The position numbers and the translations under genes are program-made. Under the pieces are notes generated by a model. That model was not told where the DNA came from. It was given only the letters and a program-made list of their open reading frames with translations, and ran no database searches. DNA of 62,515 nucleotides, filler included, from Choristocarpus tenellus KU-1152 (lineage: Eukaryota > Protista > Phaeophyceae), in assembly GCA_964200185.2 (NCBI GenBank). It is 12 parts of 12 records of this genome, joined end to end, with 100 filler letters (N's around TTAATTAATTAA, not from the genome) between each part and the next. Parts side by side here need not be neighbours in the genome. Positions count along the whole stretch, not along the records: positions 8,398 to 12,447 come from CAXNAD020016476.1; 11 more parts are not named here. One strand, written 5' to 3'. Position 1 is the stretch's first letter, and each line of letters begins with the position of its first letter. Shown piece by piece: positions 526 through 12,447 of this stretch.

Positions 526-3500
526 CTGGTTAAGAGGAGAAAGTGTGTCACCAATATATATATACAGAAGCGCAACACACAGAAGCACAGAATTGTAGGG
601 ACGGGGGCGGTAAAAGAAGGGGGTAAGGCTCATTCAGGCTCTTTTTTTAAGTTTTAAAAATAGAAAAATTGAATCTCGAATCAAGGCACCGTTTCAACAG
701 TACACAGAAGACCCTACCTACCATTAGAAGAAACGGCCTACCAAGCAGTGACAAGAAAAGAAAAAAAAAGGGGTCGAATCTTCGATAAAACATATCATTC
801 AAGAAAAATCAACCCTTATACTTCAAAAACGTTTTCACATTCTACATGTATTTGACCAAATCACTAGCGAATCAAAAAGGTTTAGTTAGTGAGTGAATAC
901 CATGGGATGGGTAAAATCTTTAAAAAAAAACTACTCCAATCGATTGGAATTAAATATTCTTCAAGAACAAAGTGCAGATTCAGCAGAACAAACGGGTTGC
1001 AAACACGCAACAAAAGAGCCATTCAAATCGAACCCCTCGACTTTCAAGATCGATTACCGTTGATCCAACTGAATCGGGGTACAATTAATTCACAGCACCA
1101 CAGTACATGTCTCAAAACTTGACATATCATAGAAATCGTGTCCGTAGTTTTCATTTTATATGCTGCCATACCTGTCACAAATTATACTCAAGATTCCACA
1201 CTATCCAACACATTGCTGTTGTATCACACCTAAAATAAAAAAATATATAGTAGTGTCCGTTACTAACACCGAAAAAAAGTCTTCACCACTGGCCTGGGGA
1301 CACCTGCCCCGTTGTAATGCCTTCCACATTGTCCATCTTGTAGATCCATCTCGAAACCCCAACTCCACAACAGCCATGACATCACACCACAATGTACACC
1401 ATATAACTAGTGATCCACTGTAACTACTACCTCCAACATGAATAAATGCATTACATATGCAGATATGTTTTTCTGCCAACCAAGAACCACAAGCACAAAA
1501 ACCACACAAAAAAAATTAACTTACTACGCAGCATATCATAATAAAAAAACATACAACTAGTCCAGGATACTAGAACATAGCAGCATCAAAAGCACAAACC
1601 AAACCAATGAGCTGCACTTCTTCCATAAAGATATCAACTTGTAGACCGCTTTCTTGAATACACAGTAACACATTCTCACCACTGAAATTCTGAAACTGCT
1701 CACTACTCTACCACCCCCCTCAATGGGCAAAGAATATCATCTCTCTATGGACAGCTGCATGTTTCTACCCTTTCCAAATCTAAGCACTGACATAACAAAA
1801 CACAACGACACGTACCTACGTACAAAATACAACAAGGTTCTTTCAGTTGGGGATTCCAAGAAGACAACCATGGAGAAAGGACAGGGATAAGACCCCTTAA
1901 AAAGACCCTTTCATGATCGATCAAAGCTACAGTTACTGCATAGTGGCAACAAAAACACACTTCAACCCCAACTCATCACAAAAAACAACTGAGCATACTT
2001 GTATAGATAGTATCTGTACCCTCACATCAGTAGTTCAGGAGGAGGTACATGTATGTTTACAAGGACCACACAAAGATGAACGCAGGGGGCTATTCGTCTG
2101 TTTTCTGAACTGAGACACAAATTTACACATTAATCTAAATGCATGGTATAGGCAGCTTCACCCCACAGGCAAGAGGCCCCAACTAGGTGGGAACTCCCAC
2201 AAGGAACAAAAAAAGAAAAAATATGGTGGACTGGGGACAAGACACCTTCCCCAGAAATATCTTTCCCTCTGTCGCAAACAAATCCTAACCATCTGCATTC
2301 CACACAATGCCAAAAAGTGTTCCCAGAGTTTTTTCCTTTCTCTCCCTCATGATGAATTTGTAGGGTGGTAACAGATTTTTTTTTAAGTTGCACAAACAAA
2401 AGAGGTCGTATAGAGAACTAAGAGTAAAACAAAACAAAGACATCCACGACAGCAGAAGTTCAACTTGGCCTCCTGCAAATTGATCCCAAAACAAAATGAG
2501 CGTAACAGTGGTTCGGATTATGTCTCATCTGTTTTCTTCCTTGCTTCCTGACTAGCATACAACAATCGTACACAGTACTTGCACACCCATTTGGAAACAC
2601 ATAGATGCTTCTGAAAGGGATTTCCTGGGGCCAGGTAGGCACTAAACTTTACAATGATGCATTACACGGGGAGAAGAGCAAAAAAAGGGTCAGCACAAAA
2701 ATCGATGCATTTAACCAATTACACTCCCTCTTGCGATCTTATGTATAGTGATGAGATATATATATACAAGTCTGGACAGTTACAATAAAGCTTCTCAGGG
2801 TACAACGGGTGGGGAGTTAGCTGAGACAGTCCAGCTTTTCCTGTCTGCATCGGTTGTCTATCGTGTTTTGGTACCTTCAAGGACTGGACGAGTTTGTGAC
2901 CCTCCCGGGGTCCGGAAACGAGAGCTCCCCATTCACCACTGACTCGCGAACGGGTCGGAAAAACCTTCGATGTTGCAAAATGGAAACCTGAGGATAGAGT
3001 GAAGGAAGTGGAATGGGTCATAACGAGTTGTTAGACGTTTTCGTCATTGACGCAGAATTTGAGGGGAAGGCCTTCGAGGATGAAGGGCCAACGTATTGTG
3101 TTTTCTACACCCTCAACTATGCAGAGATACATAGAGGGGGGCCTATGTGCGGATGGGATCCGGGCAATGAGAACAGGGTGAAGAGGGTTAATGGGGCCTA
3201 TTAGCATGGGCGATAGAACACAGCAAACGGGGAGCATGGGATGTCGACTAGCGAAAGAGAAAAAATGGAGATTACTCTAGATATAGCCCTGACGAAGGAT
3301 TGAAACTCTCCCTGGTTTAAAGAAAACATGGTTTCGGATTGATCTACTCTAAGCGTGAATGGATCAGATTGAAGCAAAGTGCTTGAAGAATAGGACGAGG
3401 TGACCAAAGAGAAGTTTGCAACTGTCGCAAAGAAAGATCACTCAAGTAGACAAGCGCAACACGTTTCAGTGTGCATCCGTGAGAGCTCGAAGGGAAGGAG

Positions 3501-8397: not shown

Positions 8398-8407
8398 TTC
8401 CAGAGCA

Positions 8408-8633
8408 CACCCAAATTATTTGGGTGGGGCGGGGCGGTGTCTACACCAGAGTGTCCATTTGGACCAAGACCAGGAAAAGTGCACTTTCTTTATCCATCCA
8501 ACACATTGAACCAAAACACCCAAATTCGTGACATGAAAAAAATGCCCCCAAATGGACAGCCGCCATCCCCCCCAGATACTTTGAGCCAGGTTCAAAACGG
8601 ATGCCGGCACCCGTCCCCCAGATACTTTGACGC
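8408..8633 (-). mobile_element. Composite MITE: inverted family B copy plus a 44-bp terminus of related family C, in an intron of the MLKL-like gene
   Basis: The family B body (8408-8587) is followed by a second terminus CCGGCACCCGTCCCCCAGATACTTTGACGC (8590-8633) that matches the left end of the element at 28089. The 4-bp duplication AGCA flanks the whole composite (8404-8407 and 8634-8637). Confidence 0.8.
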
Positions 8634-8923
8634 AGCATACACATCACAACGACGTCTCGACCTGATCACCTCAAGGACACAAATCAAGGCATAGATGAAG
8701 AGAACACCAGGACAAACAAATACAATTTTACGCAAAGAGTAAATTGATTGGTACTATTCGAAGAGGACACTACAGAAAATCTTACGAAGCTAGTATTAGC
8801 TAATAACACACCCAAAGCTACAGAGATACCAAATGATGCTTATGCAAATGCAAAAAGTTCGGAATACTCTATTCAACCAATGTTGGACTTTATGGCAGAA
8901 CAAAGTAAGACTGGCGCTCTCAC

Positions 8924-11730
8924 CTTTGCCTTCATTCTACCGTCCAGAAGGATGCTGTATGTTGTCAAGCCCCGGTGAGCCAGTCCCCGTGCGTGAAGAA
9001 ACTTCATGCCTTTGGCAACATCCTCAATGATCGTCTTAGACGTTGTATCAAGTGGCAGCCCACCCACTTTTCGGTCTTGTAGTTGCGCACGCAATCTCCC
9101 TCCCTCCATGTACTCCGTCACCATCACCAGCTTCTCAGGAAGTCTAGACGAAATGATCCCGTATAAAAATACGACGTTGGGCGATGCGGCTTTGCTCAAG
9201 CGCTCCACCTCATCAATGACGGTCCTGCGAAATTCTTCAGCAGAATCACCATCCCCATCGGCTTCAGAATACAGCAGGTCAAACGTCTTCGCCACAGCCT
9301 TGATAGAGCAATACTTCACCAGCTCCAACTTGGACAAACGACGCACGTCTTCGTTCAGCCTCTCCACGAAGATGACATGAGCCTCATCGATCTCAGTAAT
9401 TTTAAGCTTCTCTACCCTCTTTACCAATTTTTTTCTTCTACTACTATCCGTTATTTTCTCCTCGGAGGGCAATGGCAGCTCCTCATCCTTCAACACCTTA
9501 TCACATATGTCCCCTAACATATCACCCATTTCTTTCTGCCGCTTGTTGGCATGAGCACTCTGTCGGAGCGAAAAGGCATACAGAGCGCTCTGTACGCCGT
9601 CCAATGAAAGGGAGCAGTTGTCCATCAGCAGAAGGCACATATGTAGCAGCAGTCAAGAGAGTAGTGAGGGAACTATGCAAAAGGCAACATTCTGACCAAT
9701 AGAAAACATTCTGTATCAAAAACAAGCCAATAACGTATCTTTTGGCAAGCAACCTGCCCAACCCCAAAAATAATTTGAATATCTTGATGTAATTTGGCAA
9801 AAACAAGCAAGTTCAACCACTACTAATTACTAAGGGCTGAAAAGCCTGTACACAATATGCGGAATCCTACCCTTTTGTCAACCCAAGCAGAACATGCCTG
9901 ACCTGGTGATTGGGCAATCTTTCTCAGTTCATCAATTCAGTGGAGGGTTTGGTGCTCACTTGCATTGTCTCCTGTGTTGTGTTTATGTCTCTGATAGCCT
10001 GATCACTTTTTTTTGTCCATTTTTTAGATGCAAAAAACCTTGAAAATTGGTTCATACCACAGTACCACTTAACCACCTACACAGGTAAGAAGATTAAGAG
10101 GGGCATGGGATCTCATGGGTGCATCCTGCCAATTTGGACATAACTTCAAGCAAAGTCGGACTTTGTTCTGTATATGTGCATGTATTCTACACAAATATAT
10201 GTGTGCTCATATTAATAGTAGGTGACCAAGCGTAATGGTAGATTGATCCTGAGTAATGCTATTGTCCAAACATACCTTCTGCAAGAACACAGTATGAAAC
10301 AGTTGTACATGGCACTGCAGAAGAAGCCTAGCACCCTGTAACACAGCCTTTGAAATAATAAAATACTCCAACAGTACACTATAGGGACTCTTCTACTGTC
10401 AATATCTAGAAAAGCTCTCAGCTCCACTATACAAACACATAATGTCAAATAGGCAGGGCTTCCAAGGCAAGCCATCCTATCTTAGAGGGGTGGTCGTTGG
10501 GTATTGGGGTTCCTGCAAATGGCGCTCTGTTGCATGTTCTTCTAGCTCCCTGGACGGCAATTTCGCGAATATTTTGTGGACAAAACTTCGTCCTTCTTTC
10601 TACATCCACAGCCTCCTAATGTTGGCCAGCTGCACTTCGGTGTCAAGCAAAAGGTTGAAAAAACCCAAATGCTTCAAAGAGCCTAGCACAGCCCCCCTCT
10701 GATATTGGACGGTCAAACCCTAGGCGAGAAAAAGCAATAACTCTTCCCTGTCCAAGTCCAGACATGCTCAAGGCCTTACTGGGTCCGCATAAAAATCGAA
10801 TGTCTCTAAAACATATCACATCCAAGTACCACAACCAGAGCTCATGTAATGCAGTGATGTACAGTAGACTCGACTACGGTTAGAGTGATCGCATACACGT
10901 AAAAGACAGTAAAAACGCGACAGAATCACTCACCTTGTTTGCCGAATCTAGTGCTTCTTCCAGGGGCCTCATAGCACCTGTTAGGTTCTCGTGCTCCTCC
11001 TCAGCTTCCTGCGAAAAGTTCATCAGATGCGGTAAAGTTTCACGTCGAAGCGTACTGAACAAAATATAAGGAATACATAGACGTCGAACGTCCAACTGGC
11101 ACTACCTAAGAATATGGCTTGCATGATTTCGAGTCTATAACTTATCTAATAGTCTTAGCCTCAGCGTATGACTCAACCATCATGCACACAGCGTAGGACG
11201 TTAACTTGAGGAAGAATAAAAGTTGGCCTGGATTTGGTATCGCACACAGAATTCAATTTTTCTCCACATATTCGAGGCTCTATCAAAAGCAGAAATGGAG
11301 TAGCACTTCTGCACACGCTAATTACAACACCACAAGAAGGGTCCAGAGACGCCTAATTCGATTAATAGAATACTAATGGAGTGAGAACCTAAGTCTTTGA
11401 AAAATATAGTTCCAACACCAGGCCACCATCAGTTGAATTTGGAGTCACGAATGATCGTACAACATAGCCCACCTTGTCCAGTATTTCCTTAATTTCTTGT
11501 ATGGTACCAAGCAATGATTTCACCGTATTACGGATGATCTTCACACCGACTTGGCTTCCCTGGTAGGCATCCGCATATTGGAAAAGCTCTCGCACAACTT
11601 TTCCAATATTCTCAATGATAGGTAACCCCGACTCGGCCAGCAAATTAACCACCGTGTCAACTCCCTCCTCTGTAACTTCTCTTGCAACTTCTACCCATGT
11701 TTGGGTTGGATGAGACGGAGATTCTGTCAT
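8924..11730 (-). CDS. MLKL-like protein: N-terminal four-helix-bundle (MLKL_NTD/HeLo-like) domain, brace, and TKL-type pseudokinase; 3' end missing (contig ends)
   Basis: Four GT-AG exons, all phase 0: 11473-11730 (ATG), 10934-11008, 9960-10076, 8924-9589, giving 372 aa with no stops. The N-terminus includes ENLTGAMRPLEEALDSANKVVKWYCGMNQFSRFFAS. The kinase has AVAK, an alphaC Glu, SPNVVFLYG and VTEYMEGG, but no Gly-rich loop, and HRGLTTYS replaces HRDLKxxN. Confidence 0.85.
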
Positions 11731-11919
11731 GAAGAGTGTCTTGTTCGATGTACACCACTCTGTCCTTGGAATGAAGTCTTGAAGAGCAGATTTTTCTTGT
11801 GTGAGAACCATCCAGGAAAGGGCTAATATGGTATGAACTACTGTACTTGTTTTTTCCTTATTGCAAGAAGTGTGTGGATATAATAGAGGTATAAGAGAAA
11901 ACGGGATATAAGAGAGGGT

Positions 11920-12447
11920 AAATTGCCCTATCTCCACTTTTTAACCTGTAACAAGGGTTTCAACTACTTCAACAGGTTTCGCTGAAAGCCGTATCAAAGG
12001 TTAACCAAAATATAACAAAATATGTTCCTGCCCCGAGGCTGGAAAGGGGGACACCAACATTAGGGGTCATTAGAGTATCCAAGCTTTTCCACATGATCTC
12101 AGGCCTTTTGCTGGCAAATGATGGAAAGTTCTCGAGGGAGGAAAGGTTTGCCCGGGTAGCTTCAGGGAACATCCAAGAGCTAGTCACATGACTACTAGAA
12201 AGATCCCAGAGGACAAATAGACGCAGGGAGGCCCCTGGAGAGGACCCCAAGTCCCACCAGGAACGCGCTGTAGCTCTGGGTCACCAACATGGAGGAATAT
12301 CCAAGGGAGCGAGTGTACTCCTAGCACAACCCAGGGCCCCAGGGACGGAGGAGACTTTCAGTGTACTGGTCCCTAAACACCCGAGCGAGAACCAGGACGA
12401 GCTAAGGCAGGCCATCACGGATGCAAGACACAGGGTACAAGGGAATG
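11920..12447 (+). mobile_element. Degenerate CRE/SLACS-like non-LTR retrotransposon ORF fragment (region preceding the RT)
   Basis: Translation with one stop: ...RVSKLFHMISGLLL...SREERFARVASGNIQEL...ERAVALGHQHGGISKGASVLLAQPRAPGTEETFSVLVPKHPSE. This resembles the G.IS.A...L.A.P.APG.EET...L..KHP motif found upstream of CRE-clade reverse transcriptases. Truncated by the contig end. Confidence 0.6.

Follow-up and report, generated by a model that had tools for sequence, protein, structure and literature searches.

The window analysed here, a stretch of 62,515 nucleotides from the brown alga Choristocarpus tenellus KU-1152 (assembly GCA_964200185.2) to which all coordinates refer, carries in its piece 8398-12447 (record CAXNAD020016476.1) one minus-strand gene of four exons, together making 372 codons without a stop. 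Our best explanation of this gene, to which we would assign roughly even probability, is that it encodes a soluble member of the ochrophyte tyrosine kinase-like (TKL)/receptor-kinase clade, in which a helical N-terminal domain of the clade's own MLKL_N-like type is followed by a juxta-kinase helix and a probable pseudokinase. An earlier interpretation made from the DNA alone (hereafter the sequence-only reading) had proposed an MLKL-like four-helix bundle and pseudokinase, and hence a candidate executioner of necroptosis-type death. What survives of this is that the protein may work like MLKL-like proteins and may share the type of its N-terminal domain with them; it does not belong to the MLKL family by orthology, because its kinase domain proved to have other relatives. 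The architecture as such is plausibly MLKL-like, a proposition that the sequence comparisons leave slightly on the favourable side of even, whereas a role in cell death, which would rest on analogy, is doubtful.

Three public runs from one organism and one study, referred to as X1, X2 and X3, were used to examine the gene model by comparing their contigs with the piece. The exons and introns are as follows.

11473..11730, minus strand: exon 1 (E1), 86 aa, with an ATG at 11730, from translation
11009..11472, minus strand: intron 1, 464 nt, GT..AG; an X3 joint skips 464 nt
10934..11008, minus strand: exon 2 (E2), 25 aa, net charge -6, sequence EAEEEHENLTGAMRPLEEALDSANK, with X3 joints on both sides
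10077..10933, minus strand: intron 2, 857 nt, GT..AG; an X3 joint skips 857 nt
9960..10076, minus strand: exon 3 (E3), 39 aa, net charge +4, with X3 joints
9590..9959, minus strand: intron 3, 370 nt, GT..AG; an X3 joint skips 370 nt
8924..9589, minus strand: exon 4 (E4), 222 aa, within which the helical domain ends and is followed by an acidic/Pro linker, the basic juxta-kinase helix and the N-lobe of the kinase
8398..8923, minus strand: start of intron 4, with the donor GT at 8923-8922 (GTGAGA) directly after E4

All junctions are in phase 0 and all introns conform to GT..AG; E3 became visible as an open reading frame (ORF) only after the length cut-off was lowered. Contigs from X1 and X2 cover exons and introns evenly and are thus DNA-like, whereas X3 is transcript-like, with a contig depth of ~1100-3100 on exons versus ~45-105 on introns. 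X3 contigs carry the joints 9589/9960, 10076/10934 and 11008/11473, all of them CT..AC on the plus strand, and one X3 contig of 666 nt (depth 1982) corresponds exactly to 8924-9589. The exons are therefore joined in RNA as had been proposed: the four phase-0 exons and the 372-aa frame, with 9960-10076 included, are borne out by the translation and by the X3 joints, all three junctions being used, and the protein strings quoted in the sequence-only reading are present, ENLTGAM...RFFAS spanning the E2/E3 junction.

Upstream of ~11772 the X3 depth is down to 10 from 220, and joints to any earlier sequence are absent, so E1 with the ATG at 11730 is probably the first coding exon; the sole upstream ATG within 170 nt of 11730 lies at 11811. 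The transcript appears to start just upstream of E1, upstream exons beyond the piece being possible. At the other end, E4 stops shortly beyond the catalytic loop, and an X3 contig runs past 8924 into 195 letters foreign to the piece, the first 30 of which read ISDFALSHMS on the coding strand. Therefore the gene continues past the piece, and its DFG motif, the state of which the sequence-only reading had left to be recovered from RNA, is DFA. A frame reading DFA or DFG was sought in 8398-8923 downstream of E4 and not found, which rules out a next exon in that interval; the single other 'SDFA' match in the piece is an out-of-frame stretch full of stops. GC content is ~45%, introns range from 370 to 857 nt, and an Rfam search gave nothing relevant. 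These values, and nearest kinases from brown algae, a bolidophyte and metagenomes, agree with a stramenopile alga. We take the gene to be a genuine nuclear one that is expressed and comes from an alga of the ochrophyte (photosynthetic stramenopile) type.

In Pfam, E4 aa 118-220 match PK_Tyr_Ser-Thr (PF07714, E 5.7e-15) and Pkinase (PF00069, E 4.6e-13), and E4 finds 259 kinase sequences in the PDB at E<=1e-3. The best of these are the TYK2 pseudokinase/kinase, RIPK1, ULK2, LIMK, Eph receptors, DDR1 and CTR1, with MLKL chains below all of them (E 5e-6, 29 bits), as compared with 60-82 bits for ochrophyte TKLs. The best matches from a full HMMER scan have identities of 28-43%, most of them being confined to the kinase part, and a metagenome scan gave one kinase relative at 33% identity. 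Relatives that also match the region just before the kinase are from ochrophytes, namely Tetraparma gracilis GMI51802.1 and proteins of Choristocarpus, Scytosiphon and Ectocarpus, including Ectocarpus CBJ29593.1 ('hypothetical leucine rich repeat kinase'); the metagenome proteins P0138 and P0019 cover this region as well. An IQ-TREE analysis run on 71 kinase segments places the query within a clade of 30 rows (Shimodaira-Hasegawa-like approximate likelihood ratio test, SH-aLRT, 93) whose other members are P0138 with Tetraparma and the proteins from brown algae, a three-way split that the tree does not order; the terminal branch of the query is long (1.72 in this quick tree). By similarity and tree position, the kinase domain is thus a member of the ochrophyte TKL clade to which the brown-algal receptor kinases also belong. 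It is not the kinase domain of MLKL, and MLKL orthology of this domain was rejected, MLKL being far below the stramenopile TKLs in similarity. A viral origin was likewise rejected, as viral scans gave no match.

The motifs of the kinase region were assessed in an alignment with relatives (A1).

9380..9442, minus strand: juxta-kinase basic helix and EIDE motif SRRKKLVKRVEKLKITEIDEA, common to the ochrophyte TKL clade (A1; BLASTP to P0026)
9329..9364, minus strand: degenerate Gly-rich loop region ERLNEDVRRLSK with no glycine; where relatives in A1 have LGKGGFGEV, the query has LNEDVRRLSK
9287..9298, minus strand: AVAK, with the beta3 Lys kept (E4 K101), an invariant column in A1; relatives have AAK
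9209-9211, minus strand: alphaC Glu, kept (E127), an invariant column in A1
8954..8977, minus strand: catalytic loop HRGLTTYS, where relatives have HGDLKSAN or HRDLKxxN

In the allele of the window, the catalytic Asp is replaced by Gly (codon 8969-8971), the HRD+2 Lys by Thr and the Asn by Ser; 235 of the relatives' 267 high-scoring segment pairs have N at the last position of the catalytic loop, and most have HRD or HGD. The DFG of relatives is DFA here, in which the DFx Asp is kept. The comparison with relatives confirms what had been said of AVAK, of the missing Gly-rich loop and of HRGLTTYS, and by motif criteria, which ask for loss of at least one element among Gly-rich loop, VAIK Lys, HRD Asp, catalytic-loop Asn and DFG Asp, the domain is classed as a pseudokinase; both alleles lack the Gly-rich loop and have the Asn and the HRD+2 Lys replaced. 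A single-sequence AlphaFold2 (AF2) prediction for E4 reached a predicted local distance difference test (pLDDT) value of 46 and gave no usable model.

The catalytic loop is polymorphic among the three runs.

8960..9004, minus strand: polymorphic tract with seven substitutions in X1; X2 and X3 are as the window

The sole X1 contig over 8681-9086 differs from the window at seven sites, all of them within this tract, while the other X1 contigs over 8568-11919, introns included, are the same as the window, leaving 3.3 kb otherwise identical. The changes are K196Q, G202E, L203M, G207D and two synonymous ones, and turn the loop into AHRDLTTYS. Residues change in four of the six affected codons; at the nucleotide level there are five non-synonymous and two synonymous changes, with a local ratio of ~0.8 that is drawn from too few sites to carry weight. 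Because X1 reads HRD whereas X2 and X3 read HRG, loss of the catalytic Asp is not fixed but distinguishes either individuals or copies of very recent origin. The sequence-only reading's loss of this Asp therefore holds for the window, X2 and X3 and not for X1, whereas its loss of the metal-binding Asn holds throughout, both alleles having Ser; the two versions agree in the Thr-Thr-Tyr-Ser tail and in lacking a Gly-rich loop. Seven changes in 45 nt suggest either gene conversion, the donor being a paralogue not seen here, or a haplotype that has been kept for long, two origins that the contigs do not separate. A diverged paralogue as the source of the X1 variant was rejected since the flanking intron and exon are identical, a very recent duplicate still being possible.

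The case for an MLKL_N-like N-terminal domain comes in large part through the relatives. Immediately before the kinase, the brown-algal members of the clade have a conserved domain of ~155 aa in common (alignments A2 and A3; blastp 1e-8 to 1e-70). When seven rows of A3 were scanned singly against Pfam, MLKL_N was the top family in three, two of which, P0161 and P0077, are near-identical: these two match profile positions 25-127 of 142 with E-values of 1.3e-5 and 1.7e-5 (25.2 and 24.8 bits against a cut-off of 27), and the third, the Ectocarpus leucine-rich repeat (LRR) kinase P0110, matches with an E-value of 0.019. These sub-threshold matches are coherent and come from two separate branches of the clade. 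Another relative in the same kinase clade is the European Nucleotide Archive (ENA) metagenome protein P0138 (448 aa), which, like the query, has ~190 aa before the juxta-kinase motif. In the ESM Atlas, its N-terminus is linked (feature score 0.90, 191 shared features) to a cluster with Pfam MLKL_N; its other look-alike clusters are MLKL_N, RPW8 and MCAfunc from oomycetes and plants, and nine of its ten best family matches fall in one family or clan. Against the structure of an RPW8.2 cluster it gives template modelling scores of 0.54/0.50 over 130 residues, and its match to Pfam MLKL_N itself is weak (E 0.028, profile positions 3-111 of 142). A homologue search with the P0138 N-terminus found only P0138 itself.

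Regarding the layout of these relatives, P0110 (Ectocarpus CBJ29593.1) has LRRs at 128-241, a transmembrane segment at ~310-339, the domain at aa 507-662 and the kinase at 708-972, and the MLKL_N-like domain occupies aa 689-842 in P0161 and aa 583-735 in P0077; in the brown-algal receptor kinases it sits between the transmembrane segment and the kinase. Rx_N is the coiled-coil domain of plant nucleotide-binding LRR receptors, and P0119 (Scytosiphon promiscuus CAM9774536.1) has a weak Rx_N match (aa 316-373, E 0.03) within the same pre-kinase domain. P0138 starts with MGIFKK and has intact TKL kinase motifs, looks frame-shifted or truncated at the C-terminus after DFG, and groups with Tetraparma gracilis GMI51802.1 at 41% identity.

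In the query, the N-terminal exons were searched singly, and E1 alone was folded. The AF2 single-sequence model of E1 (pLDDT 71) has helices at 12-17, 21-32, 37-55 and 60-85, that is, an acidic helix (aa 12-32), a strongly amphipathic one (aa 37-55, with a helical moment of 0.67 at aa 37-54) and a third (aa 60-86) that should run on into E2. E1 has a net charge of -5, its N-terminal 35 aa being acidic. The maximum 18-aa Kyte-Doolittle mean over E1-E4 is 0.96, i.e. there is no hydrophobic segment of transmembrane type, so that the protein is taken to be soluble; an LRR or beta-propeller ectodomain with a transmembrane segment was not found across E1-E4 either. The amphipathic N-terminal helices and charged linker of the sequence-only reading agree with the helical E1 model and with the linker's composition, but part of what it called a brace-like linker is the juxta-kinase helix found throughout the clade. 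One further feature belongs here.

10008..10070, minus strand: basic/aromatic stretch KWYCGMNQFSRFFASKKWTKK, E3 aa 3-23, the segment that the sequence-only reading aligned to the alpha3-alpha4 loop of MLKL

This stretch is, by analogy, a plausible candidate for a membrane-interface loop.

E3 holds the best match of the N-terminus to the relatives' domain, although a weak one. E3 aa 2-27 align to A3 positions 99-124 (IKTYQSKNKLSRLFMSTLFKRRQEEL versus VKWYCGMNQFSRFFASKKWTKKSDQA; hhalign P 0.022), which correspond to positions ~71-96 of the MLKL_N profile, as computed from the Pfam alignment. The hmmsearch score of E3 against the A3 profile is 1.5 bits, equalled by 1.8% of 12,693 natural 39-aa decoy windows. 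When diagonals were scanned without gaps, this register stood out with a score of 22.0, as compared with -6 for the second-best diagonal. Three independent alignments agree on the register, one of them being the by-eye match of the sequence-only reading to a putative MLKL string. When the other exons were aligned in a band on the E3 diagonal, decoys scored as well in 2.7% of cases for E1, 18% for E2 and 83% for the start of E4. In an unrestricted comparison, E1 aa 16-69 match A3 66-115 better, at 7.2 bits, a score attained by 0.07% of decoys (E 2.2e-4 for one comparison), but not in the register of E3. Such a match may reflect an internal helix-loop repeat or only a shared amphipathic pattern. 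E1 aa 37-69 and E3 aa 1-23 (window 11566-11622 and 10008-10076) resemble the same part of A3, ~83-115, the two helix-loop units being …LFQYADAYQGSQ… and …VVKWYCGMNQ…, which hints at an internal repeat. Taken together, the alignments, which form a series of weak links between short sequences, make homology between the N-terminal domain of the query and the MLKL_N-like domain of its clade somewhat favoured.

A number of results weigh against this reading. At E<=10 in Pfam, single exons gave no MLKL_N (PF22215), RPW8, HeLo or Rx_N; E2 and E3 matched no family and E1 matched at chance level, the kinase matches being the only real ones. No MLKL chain was retrieved from the PDB, either by phmmer with single exons or with the A3 profile, and the relatives' MLKL_N matches lie under the Pfam gathering score. 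Neither E2 nor the start of E4 adds anything to the profile match, and the best E1 match is not colinear with that of E3. hhalign of the P0138 and P0026 N-termini against A3 gave nothing, P0138 and A3 thus failing to detect each other. An orthologue was sought in a full HMMER scan of 1.84 billion cluster representatives and none was found, and word-indexed searches for homologues of E4 and of E1 within its 182-aa ORF were blank. The MLKL_N-type domain of the sequence-only reading accordingly lacks a direct single-exon match to profile or PDB and has indirect support from the relatives' MLKL_N matches and the weak match of E3. One could therefore suppose that the N-terminus is a generic helical bundle or coiled coil unrelated to MLKL_N, and that the protein is a scaffold or decoy that modulates paralogous TKL/receptor kinases and has no membrane output. 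The failure of every single-exon test for MLKL_N, RPW8 and HeLo fits this, as does the out-of-register E1 match. In addition, the E1 model compared with PDB and atlas structures (Foldseek included) resembles, with Z no better than noise, only common bundles (for example alpha-catenin, vinculin and talin), E1 in the ESM Atlas scores 0.79, which is noise, blastp and phmmer of E1-E3 against a set of 166 proteins gave nothing, and Smith-Waterman comparisons with shuffles against the N-termini of P0138, P0043, P0026 and P0119 were not significant except for E3/P0119 (p 0.016). However, short exons have low power against Pfam profiles, the match of E3 is unique, with a register and a distance from the kinase that are as expected, and the corresponding place in relatives from the clade is taken by an MLKL_N-like domain, so that a generic bundle appears to us rather unlikely.

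Two further explanations concern the kinase part and the gene as a whole. A young shortened copy of a receptor or TKL kinase, decaying or drifting neutrally and transcribed under little constraint, would have the long branch and the several lost catalytic motifs observed here; the polymorphic catalytic Asp with five versus two changes (local ratio ~0.8), the lack of an orthologue in public protein sets and the high-copy repeats on both sides fit it as well. The sequence-only reading had itself envisaged decay, marked by close copies that keep HRD and a dN/dS near 1; the HRD of X1 agrees in part with the first of these marks but does not show decay, since HRG is the version seen in RNA (X3) and the frame is intact in all three samples. 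A frame of 372 codons open over four exons, canonical splice sites in use and high X3 exon depth are likewise at odds with decay, the beta3 Lys, alphaC Glu and DFx Asp are retained, and the 3.3 kb including introns is otherwise identical, the tract itself looking like conversion or a kept haplotype; we consider this explanation quite improbable. It is very improbable, on the motifs, that at least the HRD allele encodes an atypical active kinase working with the Lys, Glu, HRD-Asp and DFA-Asp and dispensing with Gly-rich loop and Asn. The X1 allele does have HRD again, K101, E127 and the DFx Asp are present, and most members of the clade look active, yet the nucleotide-loop region contains not a single glycine, neither allele has kept the HRD+2 Lys or the metal-binding Asn, and the expressed X3 allele is HRG.

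On the reading that we prefer, a clade member with an MLKL_N-like bundle and a pseudokinase, the protein would consist of a ~185-aa helical domain, a short acidic/Pro linker, the basic juxta-kinase helix and a degenerate TKL kinase domain. It would have originated within an ochrophyte TKL clade whose members carry the MLKL_N-like domain upstream of the kinase, with neither ectodomain nor transmembrane segment in the exons seen, and with loss of the Gly-rich loop, the HRD-Lys and the Asn, and in one allele of the catalytic Asp. The dead or near-dead kinase domain could then act as a regulated switch or receiver, phosphorylated for instance by active paralogues, and the N-terminal bundle could be the output module, which would oligomerise or dock on membranes via KWYCGMNQFSRFFASKKWTKK. 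The MLKL-like architecture would thus have arisen by parallel descent from an MLKL_N-kinase ancestor and not by orthology to animal MLKL. An extended version, which we regard as improbable, is that ochrophytes own an MLKL-type module in which receptor and executioner are fused in the brown-algal kinases, that the query is a soluble, pseudokinase-gated permeabiliser in anti-pathogen death, and that HRD and HRG are kept by selection.

Comparison with known systems shows where the likeness lies. Vertebrate MLKL (4btf, 4m68) has the same order of helical N-terminal domain, helical/charged linker and degenerate kinase-like domain with the beta3 Lys kept, and the position of its alpha3-alpha4 loop corresponds by eye, against that putative MLKL string, to the basic/aromatic stretch of the query, E3 falling in the same register on the relatives' profile. 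It differs in that the kinase domains are not orthologous (29 bits versus 60-82 for ochrophyte TKLs), that the query has no direct MLKL_N match and an additional acidic N-terminal helix, and that the query has DFA and HRG/HRD instead of MLKL's own motif variants, its C-lobe lying off the piece. The fungal HeLo/HELL domains are membrane-acting outputs whose activity needs a hydrophobic, transmembrane-prone helix at the extreme N-terminus. These domains (HET-S, HELLP) are helical bundles as well and have been proposed to form a superfamily with MLKL_N and RPW8 (PMC10197012), but the N-terminus of the query is acidic and has no transmembrane-like window, no amyloid motif and no Pfam match. Plant MLKL-like proteins, such as Arabidopsis MLKL1-3 (bioRxiv 10.1101/681015) and wheat Pm13 (PMC10951266), are implicated in immunity. 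Like the query, they come from a non-animal lineage, and they combine an MLKL_N/HeLo-like bundle, a brace and a TKL-type kinase-like domain; the Atlas look-alikes of P0138 include plant MLKL_N and RPW8 clusters. Nevertheless, they belong to another lineage and kinase clade, and no link to the query was found at the sequence level.

Closest in kinship are the brown-algal receptor kinases and TKLs, the receptor-kinase family of which has been described (bioRxiv 10.1101/2024.02.19.579948, PMC3268121). They share with the query the kinase clade, the juxta-kinase helix with its EIPE/EIDE motif and a helical pre-kinase domain of similar length, to which E3 and E1 are weakly similar. Identity is ~30-40%, and they differ in keeping LGKGGFGEV, HGD/HRD...N and DFG, and several have an LRR ectodomain and a transmembrane segment, whereas the four exons of the query have none. 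P0026 (Tetraparma GMI51802.1) is the best single-domain relative of the kinase at 34% identity, and P0138 is 35% identical over the kinase core; both share the AR[ED]KRA...EID[ED] juxta-kinase motif with the query, but have intact kinase motifs and N-termini without detectable similarity to E1-E3.

Bundles of the MLKL_N/HeLo/RPW8 type, coupled to kinase-like switches, serve animals, plants and fungi in executing or controlling immune cell death. The kind is not new, given that clusters of oomycete and fungal proteins already carry Pfam MLKL_N and that MLKL homologues are on record for Glomeromycotina (PMC8778642); the query would add a member from a new lineage. A literature search found no paper linking MLKL to brown algae, diatoms or other ochrophytes and no functional description in photosynthetic stramenopiles, and in the Phaeoexplorer preprint on the genomes of brown algae, where the receptor-kinase family is described, neither MLKL nor cell death is mentioned. 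If the N-terminal domain is of the MLKL type, brown algae and their relatives would provide an independent case of 'bundle plus pseudokinase' that stems from the receptor-kinase clade of these algae, offers HRD and HRG as a natural pair of alleles and lends itself to cheap expression assays; if it is a generic helical bundle, the gene would be an ordinary lineage-specific pseudokinase. The more general lead is maybe that, in the receptor kinases of brown algae, an MLKL_N-like domain scoring just below the threshold lies between membrane and kinase.

Both flanks of the gene, 8398-8667 and 11890-12447, are high-copy repeats. In run X1 the summed contig depth of the flanks ranges from 10^3 to 7x10^4 (10^4 at 8398-8667) compared with ~40 in the gene, and many loose contig ends occur at 8585-8591 and at 11890. 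A 21-nt direct repeat, CCCCCAGATACTTTGA..., is present at 8569 and 8615. Finally, an intron-containing X3 contig differs from the window at two positions of intron 4, 8861 (G>A) and 8884 (T>C), which makes at least three genotypes that can be told apart among the three runs.

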